DNA from: Selaginella moellendorffii
Lineage: Eukaryota > Plantae > Lycopodiophyta
DNA length: 64,000 nucleotides
Assembly (NCBI RefSeq): GCF_000143415.4
Contig: NW_003314331.1
Location: forward strand, 917,169 to 981,168
Reading direction: 5' to 3'
The position numbers and the translations under genes were made by a program. How positions within the stretch are numbered: the stretch's first letter is position 1; each line of letters begins with the position of its first letter. The notes under the pieces are model-generated. The model was not told the origin of the DNA. It was given only the letters and a program-made list of their open reading frames with translations, and ran no database searches. Below, one piece after another: positions 25,213 through 64,000 of this stretch.

Positions 25213-25237
25213 TGCGGTGAGCGTGGATCGAACACGC

Positions 25238-25280
<43 letters not shown>

Positions 25281-25285
25281 CCCGC
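25213..25285 (-). tRNA. trnF: tRNA-Phe(GAA)
   Basis: GCGGGGATAGCTCAGTTGGGAGAGCGTCAGACTGAAGATCTGAAGGTCGCGTGTTCGATCCACGCTCACCGCA; full cloverleaf. Confidence 0.97.
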
Positions 25286-29339: not shown

Positions 29340-30600
29340 AGCAGCGACTGCACCTTGAGCAAGCTTCCAGATCCAGCCAAGCTCGAAAACATTCGTCGCA
29401 GATGAATCACAGGTTGCCAAAACTAGTTTCTTACCATCCGCCCAGGAACGCGCAACATCGGCCAAACGACTAGTGATGATAACATGAGGCCGACATTGCT
29501 GTAGCACCTGGACGATTGCAGCTAGAACCCTGTTGTCAACTAGTGACATCGGGTAAAAATCAAGTCATACCAATCACTTACGTCAGAAGGAAGAACTCCT
29601 TTCTTCACTGCTGCAGGAAGAAGAGGTCATCGCAAATTCTTCTGAGCTGCTAGAAGATGAGCTGAGCCTGGGCGAGACATTTTAGAACTACGTAAGCTTG
29701 GCACTGGAGCAGCTCCAATGCCGCATTGGGACTCACATCCAATCCGCACGAAATCTCTCCGCCGCAAAAAAGATAAAATATCGAACCAAAACACGATTCG
29801 AGCTGCCTGCTACTCACCAGGAGCAGCGCGCGTGAAACACTTCTTCGAGTTGCCCGTTTCGGGCAAATGCTGTTATCGTTTCAGTCCGTACCTTTCGGGC
29901 GTCAATGAAAAACCTTTTCGCCTATTCCCTCTACTCAAGCGCAAAAGTAGTTACTGACTGGTCTTGATGAAAATCCAATTGTTGGTTGAGCTTTCTCAGC
30001 TCCAGTAGACCAAGCACAGAACAAATGCAAGGAGCAGCTTGAATCCGTGAGTCGCTGTCCCCTAATGGTCGCACCTTGCTGGATGGATCGTGGAAAAAAC
30101 TAGATCCAGAGCAATCGTTGCCACATATGTCACCAGGCTGCCCGGCCCAGGAACATAAAACCATGGTTTCTCATCGTTTTGAGTTGTGGACTGGCAGATG
30201 TGAGCTTGGTGGCTGCAAAGGACGACCTCGGCAATATTTTCTCTCATGTTTTATGTTTCTTCGTTTTCTTTTTTCTTCAGGCTCGAAAGATTCCTCCACA
30301 CCAGCTACCAACGAATCAAAGATAATGCGGTGAGCGTGGATCGAACACGCGGCCTTCAGATCCAGTCTGGCGCTCTCCCAAACTGAGCTTGGATGGTTTT
30401 AGACAATAACTTCAATATGATTAAGTTAAAATGTAAAAGCATACCTCTACAATGAGAGTTTGGGGGCTGCAGCGATCTCGATCAAACCACTACAGCGGCT
30501 ACTCTATAAATTACTCTTTAATCTCCTCATCCCAGTCGCGTACAATAAGCTTATTACTGTCTATCAAATACCGAAAATGAGTAAAATCACTTGGACCGGA
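29340..30600. repeat. Direct duplication of 62710-64000
   Basis: Identical ORF MPHWDSHPIRTKSLRRKK at 29718 and 63094; same truncated tRNA and PPR fragment. Confidence 0.92.
30326..30389 (-). pseudogene. Truncated tRNA-Phe pseudogene
   Basis: Matches 25213-25285 with an anticodon-loop deletion and missing 5' acceptor strand. Confidence 0.85.
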
Positions 30601-32639: not shown

Positions 32640-33110
32640 GTGATCTTAGCCTAGTGAGGTCTTACTTGAGGCTGGAACCTTGCTTGATCGATCCTGACCT
32701 TTGCAGATTGCTACAGACCTTCTGAGAATGTATGGATCGCTCCAGGAGGCTTGATTGGCTGGCGAGAGTCTTAAGAAGTTGGGGCAGAGAGATCTGGTGG
32801 CTTGGAATGCGATGAACGACGCTTATGCCCAGTGCGGGCTATGCAAAGAAAGGCATTTGCGATTCACGAGAGGATGCTTACAAATTCACGTACACGACGC
32901 TTCTCTCCTGCTATGACAATCTGGGCGACGTAGAAAAGATCCATGCGCACCACTGCATTTGCAATGTGGAATCCAGATAAGGTGTTTGAATAGTGGGACG
33001 TGGGGCTGTGGACTGCAATCCTCCAGGACCTAAGGATTATGGAAGCCATCCAAGTGATAGAACAACAAGGTTTCGAGCGAGCAGCTTTATGCTGCCTGCT
33101 CTCCTCCAGA
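32640..33110 (+). pseudogene. PPR remnant (paralog of 50190-52170)
   Basis: LQIATDLLRMYGSLQEA..QRDLVAWNAM..DVGLWTAIL. Confidence 0.7.
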
Positions 33111-36100
33111 TTGTGGAAGGTAATAGTTGTTGATCTGCTCAGGTCTCCAGGAATCACGCACCTGTATACAGAGTGTGATTGACATGTGAATTGCAACTCA
33201 TTTTCTCTTCACAGATCTTTTCTGTTGTATGCCTAGTATGTGCCTCAGCCGCTCGTTGGGTACCCTGGATGGTGGCCAATACATGTACACATGTAGGCCG
33301 GGAGAGTTCTTTCATCGTCTCGTGGACTGCCATGATCACGAATTACCAAGTACGGCCGGAGCGATGGAAAATGAGATGGCCTCCAAGATTGCTTGGTATA
33401 AAAAATCTTGGGTTTAAGCATTTCTATTCAAATTCTTCCGCTTCTATCGGCCTGCTCTTCTTGTGAGCTGGAAAATCTGTTAATCCAGCCCCTGGATATT
33501 TCTGATCTCCCTTCCTGTGCCCTTTATCTATCGGTAGCTACTGCAAGATAGATCCGATGCAGGCTAGATGCTCAATACCTCGAATGCCATATGGCCATGT
33601 GCCTTGCGATCTAGCGTCCTTGCGATCAATCTATTCTGTTCATTGCCATCGATCCTTTCTGATCAAGCCTTTTTCTTTCTGCATGCGTTTTCCCTCGCTT
33701 TGAGTGGCGAGATTTTCATTCGAAACTTCGCGCAGCTTGATCGAATCATCAAAGACACAAGGCCAAGTTTGGACTCCAGAGATCCTCTTCAATGTGTACT
33801 TGCGATGATCGGGGAGAGAGGTTTTGTGGAGAACATATTTCTGAACGAGGAGACTCGAGAAAGAAAATGGCAAAGATCAGGTTCTACAGGGAAAAAAAGT
33901 GATCAGTGCTCGATAGATTCACATACCCTGGTAAGACAGTCAGAGTTGTTTTAAATTCACAATCTTCCACCATGAACTTGAAATCTTTAACCTGTGAATT
34001 ATTATCCACAGTAATATCACAAGGTACATTTGTGTCATATATCTTCCTTCTGGTTTTTTAACTTGGGTAGGTGGTGCAACAAACAAATTTGTGGGGAGGA
34101 ACTTATATTCTTCGATAGGACCAAGCCAGGGGCTTTTGGAAGAAAGGTGGGAAACATTTTCGCAAATGTTCTTCCATCCATCCCAGCTCTTGAGGTATCC
34201 TTCCACTATGCAAGCATATCAAGGTCTGAAACTACAGGCTCCAGTCGGCCATGATCATCATGGCCTCATATCTTTGTTTGAGGATAAGATCACTGACATG
34301 TTTGTGTGTGAGAAAGGATTCATAACTGCACCTTTTGCAATGGAGCAAGAAATTTCTAATGTTTGTTTATTTTGCTAGATGTCGTGAAACAAGCGAGGCA
34401 AAGGAGGACGAGCAAGCGGTGATTGCCGGGCTGGAGGAGGAGCATAGAATCAGTTAGAACGCTCAAATTTCGTGGGTATGACCATAACCGGAGAAAGCAT
34501 ATCAGCTGTTTTGTGGTACGCTTGTTTCTTCCAGTTGTATAAGAATTCAATCCAAGGGCCCCGTAGGAAGTGCCAACTTTGCTATGGCCTCGTCCAGCTT
34601 TATCGCAAAGTCTTAAGGACATCCAGAGCAAGCGAGCGTAAGACGTTTCCCGTGAGTGGCGATCCACCGAGCACCCTCTGAGAGAGCTTCGAGCCTGTCA
34701 GCCGGCACCATCTTCTGGCACCATCCGTCGACTGACTTGGAGCTTGGGAGAAGTTGACAGCGTCTTGTTTAAGGTACATTTTACTAACACGATCTCCCTT
34801 CCAGGAAGAAAGGAAGCGTCTCTTTCCCCGTCTAGAACCCGAGAATTCCTTACCTTGGAAAAACCGGCAGATATCAAGAGCAGGATCATCACAGTTCCCG
34901 ACCCATCGTTTCTTCATCATAAATTTGATTTTATCATTTGGATATGTTTGCGTCTAGAGTTTCGCCAGAGGAGGAAAAATTGGGCTCAACTTATGAGTTG
35001 GATCCTCCGGGTTTGATCGTGGAGTCGAAAAGCTCTATGCGTCCATAGTGTTCCCGTTTGAGATCTCTCACTTTTCCCACTGAACTAAATGGTGAAACCA
35101 TTGTGCTCACCGCTGCTTTGGGTGCTCGGTCTTTTGTTGCTTAAAGCTGCTCTATGCATCAATGCCGCTTGCGCTTCTTTCTCTTAGACCTCGTGATGCA
35201 AGGCGTCTCTGTGCGAGGCCGGACCGAGATCACGAGCTCGAAAAGTCAATGCAGGGTCAATTATAGTCAATGCAAGGTCTTCAAAGACTATGTCTTCATT
35301 TGCTCAAGCTCGATCGCCCCAAGGTCTTCTCGAAAAACCGCCGACCCAGGAATGTATGGTATAAGATTTATTTCTTTGGACCGGAATGTAAACAGCATGT
35401 ACCCCACCCCGACTCGAGAAGAAGACTATATCTGGCGATGCTGCACGGGTACAAAACACTCGGCTCGATCCAGGCTGTAAACCCTAAACCATATCAGGGA
35501 GGAAACTCTCAATAAGAAGGTAAATTCTAATCCGCTCACTCTACATGCTCATTTGGTTATCTTGTTAGTTATGCGCCGTTCTACAGGGCAAAGGGTGGCC
35601 CCTGCCGAGGATCTGGCTAAGCAGTATGGTACCAGGACTTGGCTCATGGTTTCTGAACTCGGGTTTCATAACCGGTGCCCAAGAACGGATGAGCTTGTTC
35701 AGCTGGAAAAGGTCTTGTTCGATGGCTATGGCCCGCGGGAACCTTGGTTTGGAGTAGGTGAGTTTTATGCCATGGCCGTTGGCAAACGCTATATCTGTCC
35801 CGTTTCTCCTTTAATAATCCAAAACGAAGCACTGGAAAACAGGGAACTTTTTGATCAAAGACACCGATCATTCACTTAAGGAGTTTATGGAAACTTGGAT
35901 ACCGGAGCAGTATCACTGGAAAGTTGGCAATGTACAATCCAACCCTCGGTTCCACCAAGTTTGTCAAGCCTTTCAAACGGGATTTTTGCCTTATCTACAG
36001 GGCCGAGTTTATGTGCTTTATGCCAGCGAAATTCATCCAAAGGCTGTTCATCGAATATAAGTTAAAATTTGGTAAAGGTTGTGCTAATAAAACAGCCCCA

Positions 36101-38499: not shown

Positions 38500-39210
38500 T
38501 CTTTGGGTGAGGTCTTGTTTGATGCTGGGGCAGGGCAACCTTGCTCGATCGTTCCTCCAGGAGTTTGGCTTTGCAGATTACTACAGAGCTTTTGAGAATT
38601 TATGGATCGCTTCAGGAGGCTCGATTGAGTTACAAGAAGTTTGGGCAGAGAGATCTGGTGGCTTGGACCGCGATGAACGCCGCTTATGCCCAGTGCGGGC
38701 TATGCAAAGAGGCATTTTTGACTTACTAGAGGATGCCTTGACAGATTTACGTACACTGCTGAGTATTCATGCTTGTCTCGTGAGGGATGGAATCAAATGG
38801 GACGTCGTCATTGGTCGCTGCGGAAATCCCAGGCAGCGTCATGTCTGGCATAAGCACAGGCATGATCAACACAATCAGCATGGAGTTTCTGTGCTCTCAG
38901 GGACGATCTTGTCAATTAGTTGTTCTTTGGAAGTCAAGGGAGAATGAGGAGGTGTTTGCTCTATAGCTTCGACTTGGTGTTTTGGAACGCCATGGGTTGG
39001 GCTTGCCGAGACGGCCATGCCGTTCTAACTGCGTGTGCTACCAGTTGCCAGCATGCGCTGCTTCAAACGAACGAACTCCATGATCGAGCGGCCAGTTTGG
39101 ATCCAGTTGTGGTACTCCAAGCCTCAGAGGCTCGGCCTTGGATGGACAAACGAGATGCAGTGGTGCACAGCTCCATTCGGGCCACATCTCCAAGATGGAT
39201 CATTTCCTAA
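38500..39210 (+). pseudogene. PPR remnant (paralog of 50190-52170)
   Basis: LQITTELLRIYGSLQEA, IHACLVRDGIKWDV, FDLVFWNAM. Confidence 0.75.
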
Positions 39211-40706: not shown

Positions 40707-40779
40707 TGCGGTGAGCGTGGATGGAACACGCGGCCTTAAGATCTTCAGTCTGACGCTCTCCCAACTGGGCTATGCCCGC
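40707..40779 (-). pseudogene. Full-length tRNA-Phe(GAA) copy with 5 substitutions (TTCGA to TTCCA), probably non-functional
   Basis: Compared base-by-base with 25213-25285. Confidence 0.8.
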
Positions 40780-46199: not shown

Positions 46200-46395
46200 A
46201 GTTTCGAGATGCAATTTGATAAAGAGTCTAAGATGGAGTCTAAAATGGAGTCCCATATAGAGTTTAAGGCGGAGTCCGAGATGGAGTTTGAAGTGGAGTT
46301 CGAGATGGAGTTCAAGACTAGGTCCAAGACCAAGACTAAGATTGAGACCGAGACTGATCAAGACTAAAATTGAGATCAAGACTGAGACTGATATG
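46200..46395. repeat. Degenerate 6/12 bp minisatellite (gagtcyragatg / aagact)
   Basis: Seen directly. Confidence 0.65.
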
Positions 46396-50189: not shown

Positions 50190-52170
50190 ATGTATCTCCT
50201 CCAACACCCATGCTTCTTCAGGAGGGGCATTGCCATCAACGCAGAGGAGTTTGTGTGTCGAGATGTGGCAGATCCAATGCCCTGGAAGCAGGCAAGCGCT
50301 TGCACGCTCTGATCGCGCAGCTGCGATTACATGGCCAACATTGGCCCACCAGAATCGGTAATCTTCTTGTGGAGATGTATGGCAAATGTGGCAGTGCGCA
50401 CAACGGGCGCACAGCATTGATGCCATTGCCGACAAGAACGTTTTCTCTTGGGGCTTCTTGATCGCCGCTTATGCTAGCAGGGATGAGAGATTTAAGGTTC
50501 TTGGGTTGGAGGGAGTAAAACCGGACAAGGTGGCGTTCCTTAGCCTGGTGAGGTCTTGCTTGCATGGCAACCTTGTTCGATTGCTCCTCGAGGAGTGTGG
50601 CCGTAGCAGGATTTGCAGATTGCCACAGAGCTTCTGAGGATGTATGGATCACTGCAGGAAGGCCGAATGGCTCGAACGTTTTTGGAGAGTCTTGGACAGA
50701 AAGATCTGGTGGCCTGGAATGCGATGATCGACGCTCATGGCCGGTGCGGGCAATGCAAAGAGGCATTTCCAATTTACGAGCAAGCGGACAAAGTCACCTA
50801 CACGACGCTTCTTTCATGCTGTGACGATCTGGGCGATGGAGAAGAGATCCATGCTTGTGTAGTGAGGGATGGGATCGAATGGGACGTTGCCATGTCCACT
50901 GCATTGGTGCGCTGCTACGGTCGCTGCGGAAATCCAGAGAAAGCAGTGGCTGTGTTTGAGAATTTCTCAGGGAATAAGGACGTAGGGCTGTGGACTGCGA
51001 TGATCCTCTGCTTCGATCAGAACCAAAAGATCACGGAAGCCATTCCGGGGGATGGAGCAGCATGGTTTTCGAGCAAGCAGCTTTACATTGGTTGCTCTTC
51101 TCCAGGGATTGTCGAGCTCTTCAAAGTCTGGGTTTAGCACAGGCATGATAAACACGATCAGCTCGAGAGCCATGGAGTTTCTGTGTTCTACTGGAGGAGA
51201 TGTCTCAACCAGGGACGATCTAGTTGTTGCTACAGCACTGGTGAAATGCTTTGGAAGTCACAGGAGAATCAATGAAGCTGAGGAGGTGTTTGAGAGATTT
51301 CGACTCTGTAGATTCGACTTGGTGCTCTGGAACGCCATGGTATGGGCTTATGCCGACACCAGCCATCCCGAAGAAGTTCTGTTCGTGCTGAAAAAGATGG
51401 ATCTGGAAGGTGGTAAGGCTGATACGTTCACGTTTGCGACGGATTTAACTGCGTGTGCTGCCAGTTGCGAGCATGCATTGCTATAAACGAGCTTTCTTCA
51501 CGATCGAGCGACCAGTTTGGGGCTTGGATCTGGTAGCAGCAGTTATCAACTCGTACTCCAAGTCCCCCAGAGGCTCGGGCTTGCGAGGAGCGCTTTCGAA
51601 GGACTAGCGACGGACAAACGAGATACAGTTGTGTGGAGCTCCATGAACATGGGATACGCACGATCAGGCCACATCCAAGACGCTCTGGAGATCTTCTCGA
51701 AGATGGATCATCCGGACAAGATCACAATCGCGCAGGTGCTGGATGCCTACGCGGATCTGGCATGCCTCAGCCAGTGCAAGGCCGCTCATCGGGATTTCGT
51801 GTCGCCAAACCAAGAGCTCGAGTCGGAGACAATGGTGGCCAACGCTCTTGTACACATGTACGCGAAGTGTGGGAGCCTGGACGAGGCCAGGAGAGTTTTC
51901 GACAGAATGAGCTTGCAGTCCAGGTACATCGTCTTGTGGACTGCCATGATCTCGGCTTACGCCCAGCACGGCCGGAGCTCCGAGTCGATGGAGCTGTTCC
52001 AGACGATGCAGCAGCAAGGAGTGGAGCCGAATCAAGTGACTTTCATCAGTATCTTGAGCTCTTGCAGCCACTCGGGCTTGATCGATCAAGCAGCATACTG
52101 TTTCTACAGCATGGAGCAAGATCATAGCTTGGTGGCGTCCCAGATTGAATTGCTTTTGAAACTGAATTGA
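50190..52170 (+). pseudogene. Frameshifted PLS-class PPR gene
   Basis: Successive ORFs in different frames; stop at ~51484; NALVHMYAKCGSLDEARRVF..SCSHSG. Confidence 0.8.
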
Positions 52171-57619: not shown

Positions 57620-58125
57620 ATTTCTAAGCAGGGGCATTGCGATCGACGGGCTCTTGTGTGGAGAAGTGGCAGATCCAGTGCCCTCGAAGCAGGCAAACTC
57701 CATGGCCGCAGGGTCTACAATCTTTTGGTGGAGCGCGCAAGAACGTCTTCTCTTGATCACGGCCTATGCTAGCAGAAAAGAGGGGTGGAGGGAGTGAGCG
57801 AAGCAAGGACACTTAAGGTGGCGTTCCTCAGGCTGGCGAGGTCTTGCTGCAGGGCAACCCTGTTCAGGCGCTCCTTGAGGAGTGTGGCCTGAGCAGAGAT
57901 CTGCAGATTGCCACAGAGATTCTAAGGAATCGAAGCTCTGCTGGCTGGAGAAGTTTTTAAGAAACAGAAAAATCTGGTGACGACAGTGCGGGCAATCCAA
58001 AGATACACGAGCACCTACACGACGCTTTGCTGTGACGATCTGGGCGATGGAGAAGAGATCCACGCTTGTGTTGTGAGGGCTGGGATCGAATGGAACGTTG
58101 CCATGTCCACTTCATTGGGGCGCTT
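57620..58125 (+). pseudogene. PPR remnant (paralog of 50190 region)
   Basis: CCDDLGDGEEIHACVVRAGIEWNVAMST. Confidence 0.7.
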
Positions 58126-58186
58126 TCTGCTCAGTGGACTCGTGCACCTTAAAACTCCCAAGCTTTCAAATCTTAGCTACGGCATA

Positions 58187-58710
58187 TGTTAGGATCCTAT
58201 CCCTTACACCCTAAGCCAACTGGCTAAAGGGGTGATCACTTGATTGCAGGGCCCTTTCCTTATCCTATTATCCTAACCTGGTGCCTAATAATCCTCCCCC
58301 TCGTCAGGGAATGATCGTCCGTGATCATACTTAGGCCATCCTCCGGTCACCATGGTCCTTCTTTTAGGGTCTACCAAACCTTGGTTCTCCCTCTAGATCC
58401 ACCATGTTAAATATTCCTTTAGAATATTCTTGCCCCACTCGTCAGCCACGAGAATCGAACTGGGCAAGAATATTCTAAAGGAATATTTAACATGGTGGAT
58501 CTAGAGGGAGAACCAAGGTTTGGTAGACCTTAAAAGAAGGACCATGGTGACCGGAGGATGGCATAAGTATGATCACAGATGATCATTCCTTGACGAGGGG
58601 GAGGATTGTTAGGCACCAGGTCAGGATAATAGGATAAGGAAAGGGCCCTGCAATCAAGTGATCACCCCTTTAGCCAGTTGGCTTAGGGTGTAAAGGATAG
58701 GATCCTAACA
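58187..58710. repeat. ~250 bp inverted repeat (58187-58435 / 58462-58710), ~26 bp loop
   Basis: tgttaggatcctatcc...ttcttgccc vs gggcaagaa...ggataggatcctaaca. Confidence 0.93.
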
Positions 58711-58927
58711 TTGGTATCGGAGCTATGGTTGGATGGCCTATGGTGGGCATGGACTGGCAGGTAGGGATGTGTGGTGTGTTCAGCTTAGGGGGGAGTGTTG
58801 GAACTAAGCTGAACATGCACACAACCAGGGCAGGTAGCTCAGTGGTAGAGCACCTGGCACTGGTGTAGGAGGTTTTGGGTTCAATCCCCGGCCTGTCCAG
58901 ATCCATTTTCCAACATGGTATCGGAGT
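58595..58927 (+). mobile_element. Stack of TRIM-like units: PPT, LTR-A (58607-58710), PBS, ~65 bp, PPT, LTR-B (58796-58915), PBS
   Basis: TGTTAGG..CCTAACA and TGTTGGAA..TTCCAACA termini; PBS tggtatcggagc/t (iMet type); purine tracts gagggggagga and aggggggag. Confidence 0.8.
58828..58899 (+). ncRNA. tRNA-like cloverleaf within LTR-B (intact A/B boxes, degenerate anticodon arm)
   Basis: GGGCAGG TA GCTC AGTGGTA GAGC A CCTGG CACTGGT GTAGG AGGTT TTGGG TTCAATC CCCGG CCTGTCC A. Confidence 0.75.
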
Positions 58928-61782
58928 AACAATTTACCGGCGTCCATTTCGATTAAGTTATGCGGAGGAGCAAGAAGTTCAACGACAAGTCAAGGAGTTA
59001 CTTGAGTTTGGATTCATTCAGCCAAGTAAGTCTCCATTTGGTGCTCTGGTCTTGCTTGTGAAGAAGAAGGACGGTTCAATGCGAATGTGTATTGACTACC
59101 GCGCTTTGAACAAGAAGACAGTGAAGGATAAGATGCCGATGCCACGTGTAGATGATATCCTAGACAAGCTTGGTGAAGCACGAGTGTTTACCAAGATTGA
59201 TCTGAGGAGTGGATATCATCAGATTGCAATGGATGATGCATCTATCTCTAAGACGGCATTCAACACAAGCTTTGGACATTTTGAGTTTACAGTTATGCCG
59301 TTTGGTTTGACGAATGTACCGGCCACATTTACTCGATTGATGACGGAGGTCTTTGGGCATTATCTTCATGAGTTTGTGGAGATTTTCTTGGACGATATTC
59401 TTGTTTTTAGCAAAAATATGGAGGAGCATAGGGTGCATTTGCGCAAGGTTCTTTTGTTACTCCGAGACAGCAAACTTTATGCGAAGAAGAGCAAATGTGA
59501 ATTTGCAAAGTCAAAGGTGGAATATCTAGGCCATATTGTGACATATAAGGGTGTCAAGACGGATCCAAGGAAGGTGGCTATGGTGGAAAACTGGCCTACA
59601 CCGACTACAGTGGCTGAGTTGCGCAGTTTTCTTGGTATGGCTAGTTACTACCGATGTTTCCAGCATAAGTTTGCAGAGGTGGCTATTCCTTTGACGCGGT
59701 TGTTACGTAAGAATGTGCCATTCGAGTGGAAGACGCCACAAGAGGAGAGTTTTGTGGCGCTGAAACGATTGTTGAGCGAGGCTCCAGTGCTTCGCATTGC
59801 TGATCCATCGAAACCTTACGAGGTGACATGCGATGCGAGTGGTTATGCACTGGGAGGAGTTCTCATGCAAGAGGGACAGCCTATTGCATATGAGAGTCGA
59901 ACTTTGAATTCTGCTGATATTCCACATATGAGCAAGAGTTACTCTCTATTGTTCATGCTTTGCGGACATGGCGACACTATCTTTATGGTGCAGTGTTCGT
60001 GGTGTTGACAGATCACAAACCACTTGTGTATCTTTTCACACAGAAGGAGTTGAACACTAGGCAAGCTCGTTGGATGGTCAAACTCATGGAGTTTGGGGAG
60101 TTTCCTATTGAGCATCGTCCGGGAAAATCAAATGTGGTGGCGGATGCTTTATCTCGTGTTCGTCATGTGACGACGTTACAAACACGATTTTGTCATCATT
60201 TGAGTAAGGTGGTCAGCGAGTTTGGGTAATTGGTTGAGCATGCTCAGGCTCAGGATGCTGAGGTGGCCTCTTTGCGAGACCAAATGGAAGCTCCTTTCTC
60301 ATTGGTGGATGGGATTCTCTACTACAATGGCCGTGTCTATTTGCCACGGGTGGATGCGTTAATTACTCAAGTTTTATTCCACTATCATGATCGTCCAGAG
60401 GCCGGTCATTTTGGGGGGAAGAAGACGTATGAGTTGATTAAGCGCAACTTTTATTGGAGGAATATGAAGGCTGATATCCTCAAGTATTGTAAATCATGCG
60501 AGCTTTGGACTTTTGCAACCTTTACCTATTCCTCAGAGCCGTTGGTGTAGTATTTCTATGGACTTCATCACTTGTTTGCCACGAACACAGAGGCAAAAGG
60601 AGCAAGTATGGGTCATAGTGGATCGGTTGACGAAGTATGTGCGGTTGTTGGCTCTTCGGAAGACTGTCACTGCCTCAGACTTGGCTGCGGTTTACTTGGA
60701 GAAGGTTTTTCCTGATTTTGGTTTGCCAGAGGACATCATTAGTGATCGAGATTCAAAGTTCACTAGTGGATTTTGGAAAAGCTTTGCAAAAGCTATGCAA
60801 GTGACTTTGAAACTCTCGAGTGGAGATCATCCTCAGACGGATGGGCAAACTGAGCGTGTGAATCAGGTGGTGGAGGATATGCTACGTTGTAGCATTGGTC
60901 AAAGGTAAGGACAGTGGGATTTATATCTTCCGTTGGTGCAATTTGCTTACAATAATAGCCAACACAGTGGAACAAAGCTAAGTCCTTACTTTGCCATGTT
61001 TGGAAGGCATCCTCGAACAGCGGTGGAGTTGGGATTGCATTTGAGTAAGGACGTTCAAGATAAGCTTGATTCCGAGGCAACTGATCTGGCCACAGAACTT
61101 GATGAGATTTTGGTGGTGTGCAAACGGAATTTGCAAGCAGCTCAGGATAGAGCGGAGAAGTTTGCCAATGAGCATCGCCAATTCCGGGAATATAAGGTGG
61201 GTGATCTCGTCTTTGTGCGAGTGATCTTTCCGTCAAGTGAGCGGCGGAACACCTTGGTGCCTTTACGGACAGGGAAGAGTGATAAACTCTCCCATTGATA
61301 TGCTGGTCCATATGAAGTGCTGGAGCGCATTGGTAAAGCGGCTTATCGGGTGCGGCTGCCAGCTGGGGTGAAAATTCATCCGGTATTTTATGTCAGCCAG
61401 TTGAAAGGTGTACTATCTCGGAGTGACGGGCCCAATGCCTCCTTGATGTATACGGCTGTGGAAGATGGACCAGGAGCTTGAGCCCCCAGAAAGGGTGATC
61501 ACCAGTACAACTCATCCTTGGGACAAGGACTTTGTTGGGGGGGAAGAATTGTTAGGTGCCAGCTTTGACTACGTGGTCAACGTCGGTCAAAGGGAGGCTC
61601 AAGGGTATATTAAGGCATGTTAGGGTAAGGGACTTAACCTACCCTAGGGCTCACAGTGGAGCGGCAGCGCAGTGGAGCTTTTGAGGTAGCTCGGGGGTGG
61701 TTGGGTGGTGAGGAACCTCAAGAGGTGGCGTAGCATAGTCTAGGGCAACTAGAGCTTTGTCTTTTTGTGCCGGATCATAACA
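58928..61782 (+). mobile_element. Defective Ty3/gypsy retrotransposon: RT-RNaseH-integrase with stops/frameshifts, PPT ~61537-61549, 3' LTR ~61550-61782
   Basis: RMCIDYRALN, DLRSGYHQI, MPFGLTN, FLDDIL, CDASG, TDHKPL, ISMDFI, IISDRD, QTDGQTERVN, GPYEV. Confidence 0.93.
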
Positions 61783-62709
61783 ACGTAGCTCTTCAATGCT
61801 ACAGCATTGTATGTGTACAGATCTTTTATATGTTCGAATGTCTTAGAAGCAATACTTTCGTCTTGCAACTGTGGATGGAATGTCGTTCTTGTTGGCAGTC
61901 ATGGAAGGATGTCTCAAGGAAACCTGTTCTATGTTGATTCCAACACAACTGTTAAACAAACTTAAAAAGAAAGTGTTAGGAATGAGCTCCTCACCGTGGC
62001 AGTGTTGTGCACAGGCATGCAATCAAGGTTTCTGCACTGTTTCATGCCTTACAGATTTGATTAAAGCCAGCATTTTATTTGGGTTTGTTCCTGACTGGTA
62101 AGACTGTGCAAACAAGAGTGGCATACCAATTACATACCAGAAGAAGCTAATGGAGCAGCCGACACCAAATGTAATTGGATCCACATTCTCCTCCTACCAC
62201 CCCACCTGATGGCTGTCATTAGGATCGACAGTTTGCTGGAAGCATGGCTTACTCAATGGACAAAGTGTACATAATGAACGTCCTTAAGAGGTCCATTTAG
62301 AAGCCTATTCACCACCATGCCATAACTTGCCACCTGGAGTGGTCATTTGTCACCAAGCGGGAAGATGGGACACATGGAGTGTTAATGTCATGCAAAGAAG
62401 GCTGCCACCCAGAGCTTACTCAGAGCAATTTGTTGTTGATGATGGCTCTTCACCCATCACTAGTGTCTGCTTTAAAGGTGTTATGGCTGGATAGTGGTGG
62501 TTTGTTTCATATGACTCCTTTAAGATTTATGTTTCACATCTACAATAGGTTATGTTGGCGACAAATGACCACTCCAGGTGGAAGGCCATGGCATGGTGGT
62601 GATCAGGCTTCCAAATGCAACTGCCCAACACTCGCATCCCCCACTATCCTTCCAGTGCTCACAGCCTACCATGCCCCAAGGAGACAAGCACTTCACCCCA
62701 AGGAGTCAA

Positions 62710-64000
62710 AGCAGCGACTGCACCTTGAGCAAGCTTCCAGATCCAGCTAAGCTCGAAAACATTCGTCACAGATGGGTTGCCAAAACTAGTTTCTTACCAT
62801 CCGCCCAGGAAAGCACAACATCGGCCAAACGACTAGTGATGATAACATGAGGCCAACATTGCTGTAGCACCTGGACGATTGCAGCTAGAACCCTGTTGTC
62901 AACTAGTGACATCGGGTAAAAGTCAAGTCATATCAATCACTTACGTCAGAAGGAAGAACTCCTTTCTTCACTCCTGCAGGAAGAAGAGGTCATCCATTCC
63001 GAGACTAGCAAATTCTTCTGAGCTGCTGGAAGATGAGCTGAGCCTGGGCGAGACATTTTAGAACCAAGTAAGCTTGGCACTGGAGCAGCTCCAATGCCGC
63101 ATTGGGACTCACATCCGATCCGCACGAAATCTCTCCGCCGCAAAAAAGATAAAATATCGAACCAAAACACGATTCGAGCTGCTTGCTACTCACCAGGAGC
63201 AGCGCGCGTGAAACACTTCTTCGAGTTGCCCGTTTCGGGCAAATGTTGTTATCGTTTCAGTCCGTACCTTTCGGGCGTCAATGAAAAACCTTTTCGCCTA
63301 TTCCCTCTACTCAAGCGCAAAAGTAGTTACTGACTGGTCTTGATGAAAATCCAATTGTTGCTTGAGCTTTCTCAGCTCCAGTAGACCAAGCACGGAACAA
63401 ATGCAAGGAGCAGCTTGAATCCGTGAGTCGCTGTCCCCTAATGGTTGCACCTTGCTGGATGGATCGTGGAAAACTAGATCCAGAGCAATCTTTGCCACAT
63501 ATGTCACCAGGCTGCCTGCGGGCCGTTATGGCCCAGGAACATAAAACCATGGTTTCTCATCGTTTTGAGTTGTGGACTTGCAGATGTGAGCTTGGTGGCT
63601 GCAAAGGACGACCTCGGCTAGACAAAATATTTTCTCTCATTTTTTATGTTTCTTCGTTTTCTTTTTTCTTCAGGCTCGAAAGATCAGGAAGCTCCTCCAC
63701 ACCAGCTACCAACGAATCAAAGATAATGCGGTGAGCGTGGATCGAACACGCGGCCTTCAGATCCAGTCTGACGCTCTCCCAAACTGAGCTTGGATGGTTT
63801 TAGACAATAATTTCAATATGATTTAGTTAAAATGTAAAAGCTTACCTCTACAATGAGAGTTTGGGGGCTCCGGCGATTTCGATCAAACCACTACAGCGGC
63901 TACTCTATAAATTCCTCTTCAATATCCTCATCCCAGTCGCGTAGAATAAGTTTATTACTGTCTATCAAATGCCGGAAATGAGTAAAATCACTTGGACCGG
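62710..64000. repeat. Direct duplication of 29340-30600, continuing past the window end
   Basis: Near-identical sequence. Confidence 0.92.
63727..63790 (-). pseudogene. Truncated tRNA-Phe pseudogene
   Basis: Same lesions as 30326-30389. Confidence 0.85.

Follow-up and report, generated by a model that had tools for sequence, protein, structure and literature searches.

What is a 120-bp unit that ends like an LTR, consists for the most part of a tRNA-like sequence and lies among pieces of other retrotransposons, and how did such an arrangement come about? We considered these questions for a block of retroelement sequence (58186 to about 62013) in a 64,000-nucleotide stretch of Selaginella moellendorffii DNA, the whole of which is referred to here as the window. 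Comparison with published families points to Helenus-1_SMo: the piece at 58712-58926 is in all probability a truncated and slightly decayed copy of this family, immobile, and joined at its primer-binding sites (PBSs) to pieces of two other LTR elements (Table 1). The initial annotation of the locus had proposed a miniature LTR with a tRNA-derived putative RNA polymerase III (Pol III) promoter, i.e., a tRNA analog of Cassandra, and this proposal is supported by the match of both the LTR (116 of 120 positions) and the internal portion to Helenus-1_SMo.

The components first read from the sequence, namely a 120-bp TG...CA unit with a purine tract before it and an initiator-Met-type PBS after it, are all present at 58796-58926. 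The unit ends in 8-bp inverted termini, the purine tract (PPT) lies right before it and a PBS right after it, and the non-coding internal portion is short (84 bp), an organization in which the piece agrees with Helenus, as it does in the sequence of its LTR and internal portion. Its layout is internal portion, one LTR, and the first 11 nt of a further PBS, at which point the Helenus sequence stops: base 58927 is a T, where the corresponding base of Helenus-I is a C. Cassandra uses the canonical plant initiator-Met PBS, quoted as TGGTATCAGAGC (PMC7215508); the PBS at the start of the internal portion agrees with this sequence at 11 of 12 positions, and the copy following the LTR at 10 of the first 11. 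The label "iMet-type" stands here for the 11/12 match to the canonical plant PBS.

Table 1. Features of the retroelement block, in order along the window (positions are those of the window)
Feature	Position	Strand	Remarks
Inverted repeat, 526 bp	58186-58711	.	Arms 58186-58435 and 58462-58711, 26-nt spacer
LTR of element X, 104 bp	58607-58710		TGTTAGG...CCTAACA; followed by one T, then the Helenus PBS
PBS	58712-58723	+	TGGTATCGGAGC; start of the Helenus internal portion
Helenus-1_SMo internal portion, 84 bp	58712-58795	+	Matched to the published 85-bp consensus
Hairpin	58764-58828	+	End of the internal portion and start of the LTR; PPT/LTR junction in a 15-nt loop
PPT	58787-58795	+	AGGGGGGAG; purine tract directly before the LTR
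Helenus-1_SMo LTR, 120 bp	58796-58915	+	Termini TGTTGGAA and TTCCAACA; 116/120 vs. consensus
tRNA-like module, 72 nt	58828-58899	+	Rfam tRNA 49.5 bits; ARAGORN
A box	58835-58845	+	TAGCTCAGTGG; TAGCT..TGG
Second TTTT run	58873-58876	+	Inside the tRNA-like body; two C-to-T changes from consensus TCCT
B box	58878-58888	+	GGTTCAATCCC; GGTTC at 58878-58882
TTTT run, candidate Pol III terminator and putative R/U5 border	58906-58909	+	6 nt past the tRNA-like module; in consensus
Second PBS copy, 11 nt	58916-58926	+	TGGTATCGGAG; directly after the LTR, Helenus sequence stops here
Ty3/gypsy pol remnant (Y)	58928-61549	+	RT, RNase H, integrase; no gag or protease
3' LTR of Y	61550-62013	+	Start TGTTAGGTGCC; candidate ends 61782, 61945, 62013

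The published Helenus-1_SMo, from S. moellendorffii assembly GCA_000143415.2, has a 120-bp LTR, an 85-bp internal portion, a full length of 325 bp, and a 5-bp TSD (PMC10886601). We probed the window with short blocks of both consensus sequences from DataS1, the supplementary FASTA of that paper. The LTR was 96.7% identical to its consensus, with one, three, and no mismatches in the successive 40-nt blocks, all four of them transitions. The internal portion differed by three substitutions and a 1-nt deletion, the deletion being a missing G and the substitutions being split between the first 44 nt (two) and the last 39 nt (one). All seven substitutions of the copy are transitions, several of them at CG or CNG sites, and hence of the kind produced by the usual decay expected for a methylated repeat. 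S. moellendorffii is the only plant with a characterized Helenus family (Kojima 2024, Biology 13:119, PMC10886601), and the copy is not new as a discovery, the family having already been published in 2024 from the same species and assembly. The paper devotes three sentences to this plant family (section 3.4), with nothing on primer tRNA, terminator, hairpin, or autonomous partner (PMC10886601). To these the present locus adds a 3'-end initiator-Met-type PBS, a tRNA-gene-like TTTT run straight after the module, and a very stable hairpin, also in the consensus, which shows the PPT/LTR junction in its loop.

The piece is a fragment of a Helenus family member and not a complete element. It shares with Helenus-1_SMo the host species, an internal portion bearing PBS and PPT, A and B boxes in a tRNA-like module, and a TTTT run. 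Unlike Helenus-1_SMo, it carries seven transitions, one deletion, and PBS fusions, as well as the features that leave it inert and unable to move, i.e., a single LTR, the lack of a TSD, and a new TTTT run inside the tRNA-like body. Where a 325-bp element would have its 5' LTR there is a different, 104-bp LTR, and where 5-bp TSDs would be expected, other retroelement sequence adjoins the Helenus piece on both sides. No second Helenus LTR was detected in the 64-kb window, either with a 22-nt A-box probe (3 mismatches) or with 40-nt consensus probes, and BLAST of 58101-62100 against the window returned no further Helenus copies. Exact-pattern scans of metagenome contigs, one for each half (5' and 3') of the tRNA-like part, found none, and a scan for bacterial-type promoters and terminators, which is not relevant to a plant, found nothing. 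The hairpin across the junction of internal portion and LTR folds at -31.2 kcal/mol with ~24 pairs (z = -5.85, none of 200 shuffles folding as well). It takes in the first 30 nt of the LTR, with the purine tract and the LTR terminus in its loop, and both of its arms were found by eye in the published Helenus consensus.

The tRNA-like module had been described as a 72-nt cloverleaf with paired acceptor, D, and T arms and an aberrant anticodon arm, a description that Rfam, ARAGORN, and direct pairing bear out in every particular. The Rfam tRNA model scored well above its gathering score of 29 at this position (E = 1.4e-7 for the whole window), and ARAGORN called the module as tRNA-Gln(CTG). Direct pairing accounted for 7/7 pairs in the acceptor stem, G3.U70 among them, for 4/4 in the D stem, and for 5/5 in the T stem, two of these being U.G. 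The anticodon arm has a G.G mismatch at 31:39 and an A at position 33, where U is universal in tRNAs. In free-energy folding of the tRNA-like part, the minimum-energy fold was not the cloverleaf (z = -1.3), so the tRNA likeness rests on the covariance-model score and direct pairing. The anticodon triplet is CTG in the window copy vs. CCG in the Helenus-1_SMo consensus, which has the same A33 and mismatched anticodon stem. By its A33, its G31.G39 mismatch, its inconstant anticodon, and its non-cloverleaf fold, the module falls short of a functional tRNA gene. It does carry the TRGCY, YGG, and GGTTC motifs, all of which are conserved in Helenus according to Kojima; with one copy examined here, box conservation across copies rests on the published consensus.

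Helenus has been presented as the tRNA counterpart of Cassandra, both being grouped as class "TRIMp3" (PMC10886601). Like Cassandra, it is a miniature non-coding LTR element (TRIM), each of whose LTRs contains a T-run and a module derived from a Pol III gene, and it has a 3'-end initiator-Met-type PBS (TGGTATCAGAGC in Cassandra, TGGTATCGGAGC in the Helenus copy). In Cassandra, a TRIM group of vascular plants, the captured gene is a 5S rRNA gene, which supplies a Pol III promoter and terminator in the LTR, whereas the captured gene in Helenus is a tRNA gene, and the copy does not qualify as Cassandra, Rfam having returned no 5S rRNA match here at gathering or E ≤ 10 thresholds. Pol III transcription has been demonstrated for Cassandra, whereas for Helenus it has only been proposed and is unproven by the paper's own statement (PMC10886601); we found no later literature, after Kojima 2024, on Pol III use by Helenus.

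If Helenus works as this likeness suggests, the A and B boxes of the module would recruit Pol III, with transcription starting in the 5' LTR, at the tRNA-like part or just ahead of it, and stopping at the TTTT run of the 3' LTR, which would yield a terminally redundant RNA of ~290 nt. The LTR would be divided into a U3 of ~32 nt, an R of ~82 nt (from the tRNA-like part through to the TTTT run, 58906-58909), and a U5 of ~6 nt. For packaging and copying, the RNA would rely in trans on an autonomous LTR retrotransposon, with minus-strand priming at the 12-nt initiator-Met-type PBS and plus-strand priming at the purine tract, and the product would integrate through its TG...CA ends with 5-bp target duplications. 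In the consensus, a TTTT run separates the PBS from the putative start in the 5' LTR, so that a transposition template transcribed by Pol III would require read-through. Only transcripts reading through this run would contain the PBS and the internal portion, and an efficient stop there would give only an ~80-nt RNA, which could not be reverse-transcribed. The need for read-through is a point not discussed in PMC10886601.

Both the origin and the role of the tRNA-like part admit other explanations. With tRNA calls from both ARAGORN and Rfam, it could be taken for a true tRNA gene or pseudogene, or for a tRNA-derived SINE whose insertion happened to hit the short LTR of this copy. A later SINE insertion had been named at the outset as an outcome that would overturn the proposal, and the tRNA-like part instead proves to belong to the family consensus, where it occupies the identical position. 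The A33 and the G.G mismatch stand in that consensus too, the anticodon triplet varies between copy and consensus, and the 72 nt have neither an A-rich or LINE-like tail nor a duplication around them. SINE2 elements do resemble the module, since their head derives from a tRNA and its A and B boxes serve as the internal promoter for Pol III. SINEs depend, however, on LINE machinery for their copying, terminate in a tail that is A-rich or LINE-like, and lack LTR, PBS, and PPT alike, whereas the Helenus module is framed by TG...CA, PPT, and PBS, and just 16 nt separate it from the TG...CA terminus and the PBS. A chance tRNA or SINE insertion in this one copy is thus refuted for practical purposes by the family consensus, and we consider it exceedingly improbable; for the family as a whole, the insertion of a tRNA-derived SINE into a TRIM LTR has been proposed as the origin (PMC10886601). 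The other alternative grants that the module belongs to Helenus but denies that it is the promoter of the transposition template: Helenus RNA would come from Pol II or from flanking-gene read-through, and the tRNA-like part would survive as a relic of a captured SINE or tRNA, or would aid packaging or RT/nucleocapsid binding by tRNA mimicry. The main argument for this alternative is the TTTT run that sits 6 nt past the module in every Helenus LTR, between the putative start and the PBS, and the alternative would fit the cloverleaf that is defective even in the consensus (A33, mismatched anticodon stem). It would also fit the very stable PPT/LTR hairpin, which shows selection on RNA or cDNA structure too, and Pol III transcripts have been demonstrated for Helenus by nobody. 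Against it, what is conserved across Helenus families of fungi, animals, and Selaginella is the A and B boxes, not tRNA function; Cassandra, with the same layout, is transcribed from its own Pol III promoter; and the 325-bp element is within the size range that Kojima ascribes to Pol III processivity. On these grounds we judge a non-promoter role rather unlikely, and we keep to a putative internal Pol III promoter as the reading of the module. A practical consequence of the tRNA likeness is that Helenus-type LTRs get called as tRNA genes by tRNA finders, so that masking is advisable.

The setting of the Helenus piece is stranger than the piece itself. On its left, the piece is preceded by a long inverted repeat. 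The two arms are 250 nt each and 97% complementary (8 mismatches), and their pairing ends exactly at 58186/58711, the latter being the base before the Helenus PBS. The right arm consists of the non-coding 3' end of an LTR element, here called X, followed by a purine tract, the 104-bp LTR, and one T. The Helenus PBS follows without a gap, and the X-to-Helenus joint falls within the shared 12-nt PBS. The inverted repeat, if transcribed, would make a long double-stranded hairpin. Matches to miRNA families at 58362-58527 were far under gathering scores and were discarded, as they reflect only this long hairpin.

On its right, the Helenus piece is followed by a pol remnant, Y. Pfam identified RVT_1, RT_RNaseH_2, Integrase_H2C2, and rve in Y, and the order RT, RNase H, integrase is that of Ty3/gypsy. 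The pol frame is broken into at least five ORFs, and RT homology begins at 58938, corresponding to residue 242 of a protease-RT protein. The best homologs were plant Ty3/gypsy RT proteins at 50-60% identity. A protein word search over a limited length range returned no Selaginella relatives of the Y RT; its matches, 39-62% identical, came almost all from other plants and green algae. The longest ORF of Y (58875-60008, 377 aa) opens with a TTG start inside the Helenus LTR and runs via the PBS into the RT. Residues 1 to 18 and part of residue 19 come from Helenus/PBS sequence, and this N-terminus is a fusion artefact, not real. A purine tract lies immediately before position 61550, where the 3' LTR of Y starts, and no second copy of this LTR was found in the 64-kb window. 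The three LTRs (X, Helenus, and Y) and their adjoining sequences show no detectable kinship past the first few terminal bases. Neither the Helenus LTR nor its internal portion aligned locally with the neighboring LTRs or pre-LTR regions any better than shuffles did, and a common origin was rejected. A hidden tRNA-like part in the Y 3' LTR, for which a GGTAGCTC word had been considered, was likewise set aside, with no Rfam match at E ≤ 10 and no significant alignment.

Several paralogous copies or pseudogenes of a PPR gene lie at 32700-33362, 38506-39176, 50220-52170, and 57627-58124; the copy at 50.2-52.2 kb is frameshifted, and the one at 57.6-58.1 kb is only partial, stopping 60 bp short of the retroelement block. 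All homologs found for the adjoining kinase ORF, paralogs included, were from S. moellendorffii, an independent confirmation of the species. Two tRNA-Phe(GAA) genes are present on the minus strand, at 25213-25285 and 40707-40779, the one scoring 66 bits being clean and the other, at 45 bits, having mismatches in its stems. A Phe-like fragment at 63724-63790, also on the minus strand, is 94% identical to the first tRNA-Phe over 68 nt and receives no ARAGORN call. These tRNA-Phe copies fall within a tandemly duplicated region, in which 62710-64000 matches 29340-30599 at 93.5%. Between 44200 and 50200, ~6 kb are devoid of ORFs of at least 120 aa, with GC content down to 33-38% and a strong excess of G over C (skew up to +0.34). 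This stretch includes, at 46219-46392, short tandem repeats rich in purines, whose periods are 12, 24, and 36. Just right of the block, 68-nt inverted repeats at 62289-62356 and 62555-62622 are 85% complementary and 198 nt apart, and this pair may be a small foldback or MITE-like element.

The three joints of the block all lie at PBSs or LTR-PBS borders. A pentamer, GGCAT, is found at 58181-58185 and again, past a CA, at 62014-62018 (chance expectation ~0.13), the right end used being one among the three candidates for the end of the Y LTR. Comparison of the flanks with the paralogous PPR pseudogene at 50.2-52.2 kb showed homology ending at 58125, 60 bp before the block, and resuming nowhere past 62013. 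Alignment of the outer LTRs of the block showed them to be unrelated. Self-primed "snap-back" minus-strand DNA is known from retroviruses. Complex insertions attributed to template switching have been defined by outer LTRs that are almost identical and by an evident TSD (Sabot and Schulman 2007, PMC1950507). The block resembles them in uniting several retroelement modules, in having its joints at replication landmarks, and in a possible 5-bp duplication. It differs from them in its dissimilar outer LTRs, in a TSD that is only weakly indicated (P about 0.13), and in an inverted arm that is absent from the published cases.

Whether the block was assembled before or after integration can be weighed on these observations. 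A single aberrant reverse-transcription product would have arisen if one plus strand had been drawn over three minus-strand cDNAs in one particle, in the order snapped-back incomplete X cDNA, complete Helenus cDNA, and incomplete gypsy cDNA. The right arm of the inverted repeat would then be a snap-back copy of the X minus strand that went on to copy the primer, giving the PBS, and each hand-over would have occurred where the tRNA primer had been copied, i.e., at a PBS. This account would explain why the left arm begins, on its outer side, with the complement of the single base between LTR X and the PBS, with pairing stopping there, that base being the first one that a tRNA-primed minus strand would add. 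It would also explain why the X-Helenus joint lies inside a shared 12-nt PBS, and why the succession PBS, internal portion, PPT, LTR, PBS is what would be expected if a complete Helenus minus strand, its primer still attached, had been copied into a plus strand. The GGCAT pentamer on both sides of the block agrees with it as well, and the building of complex insertions by template switching is documented in grasses (PMC1950507). Several observations speak against it: the pentamer would match by chance in ~13% of cases, the true end of the gypsy LTR is ambiguous among its candidates, and at the left end an extra A is left over that integrase processing would normally remove. Further, the unrelated outer LTRs do not conform to the definition of Sabot and Schulman, the third joint (PBS to RT, 58926-58928) shows no evident homology, and three different templates in one particle is much to ask. 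We regard formation in a single reverse-transcription event as possible and on balance somewhat doubtful. Assembly after integration would instead start from nested or neighboring elements, possibly a Helenus tandem array, trimmed by microhomology deletions at the shared PBS and combined with an inverted duplication, or else the inverted repeat would be an assembly artefact joining two haplotypes. Cassandra often occurs in tandem LTR-internal arrays (PMC7215508) and tandem arrays are documented in one Helenus family; such arrays would explain the order internal portion, LTR, PBS. Most complex LTR insertions are indeed products of post-integration recombination, and then lack TSDs (PMC1950507), the arms differ at 8/250 sites, near haplotype-level divergence, and the heavily broken gypsy pol indicates a region old enough for rearrangement. 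This history, however, would need three independent breakpoints all at LTR/PBS borders, and a genomic fold-back has no reason to end exactly at the last base before a PBS; its chances seem to us to fall just short of even.

Whichever of these histories applies, the most probable identity of the piece at 58712-58926 is that of a truncated Helenus-1_SMo copy, and the block that holds it may be a fossil of faulty reverse transcription, which one locus cannot prove. If the block did form as a single reverse-transcription product, this would place Helenus RNA inside a gypsy-type particle, and it would be a first physical hint to the autonomous elements that copy plant Helenus, a point left open by PMC10886601. 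Here Helenus is welded at PBSs to gypsy-type sequences, and such fusions, if they recur genome-wide, could reveal the autonomous elements that mobilize the family.
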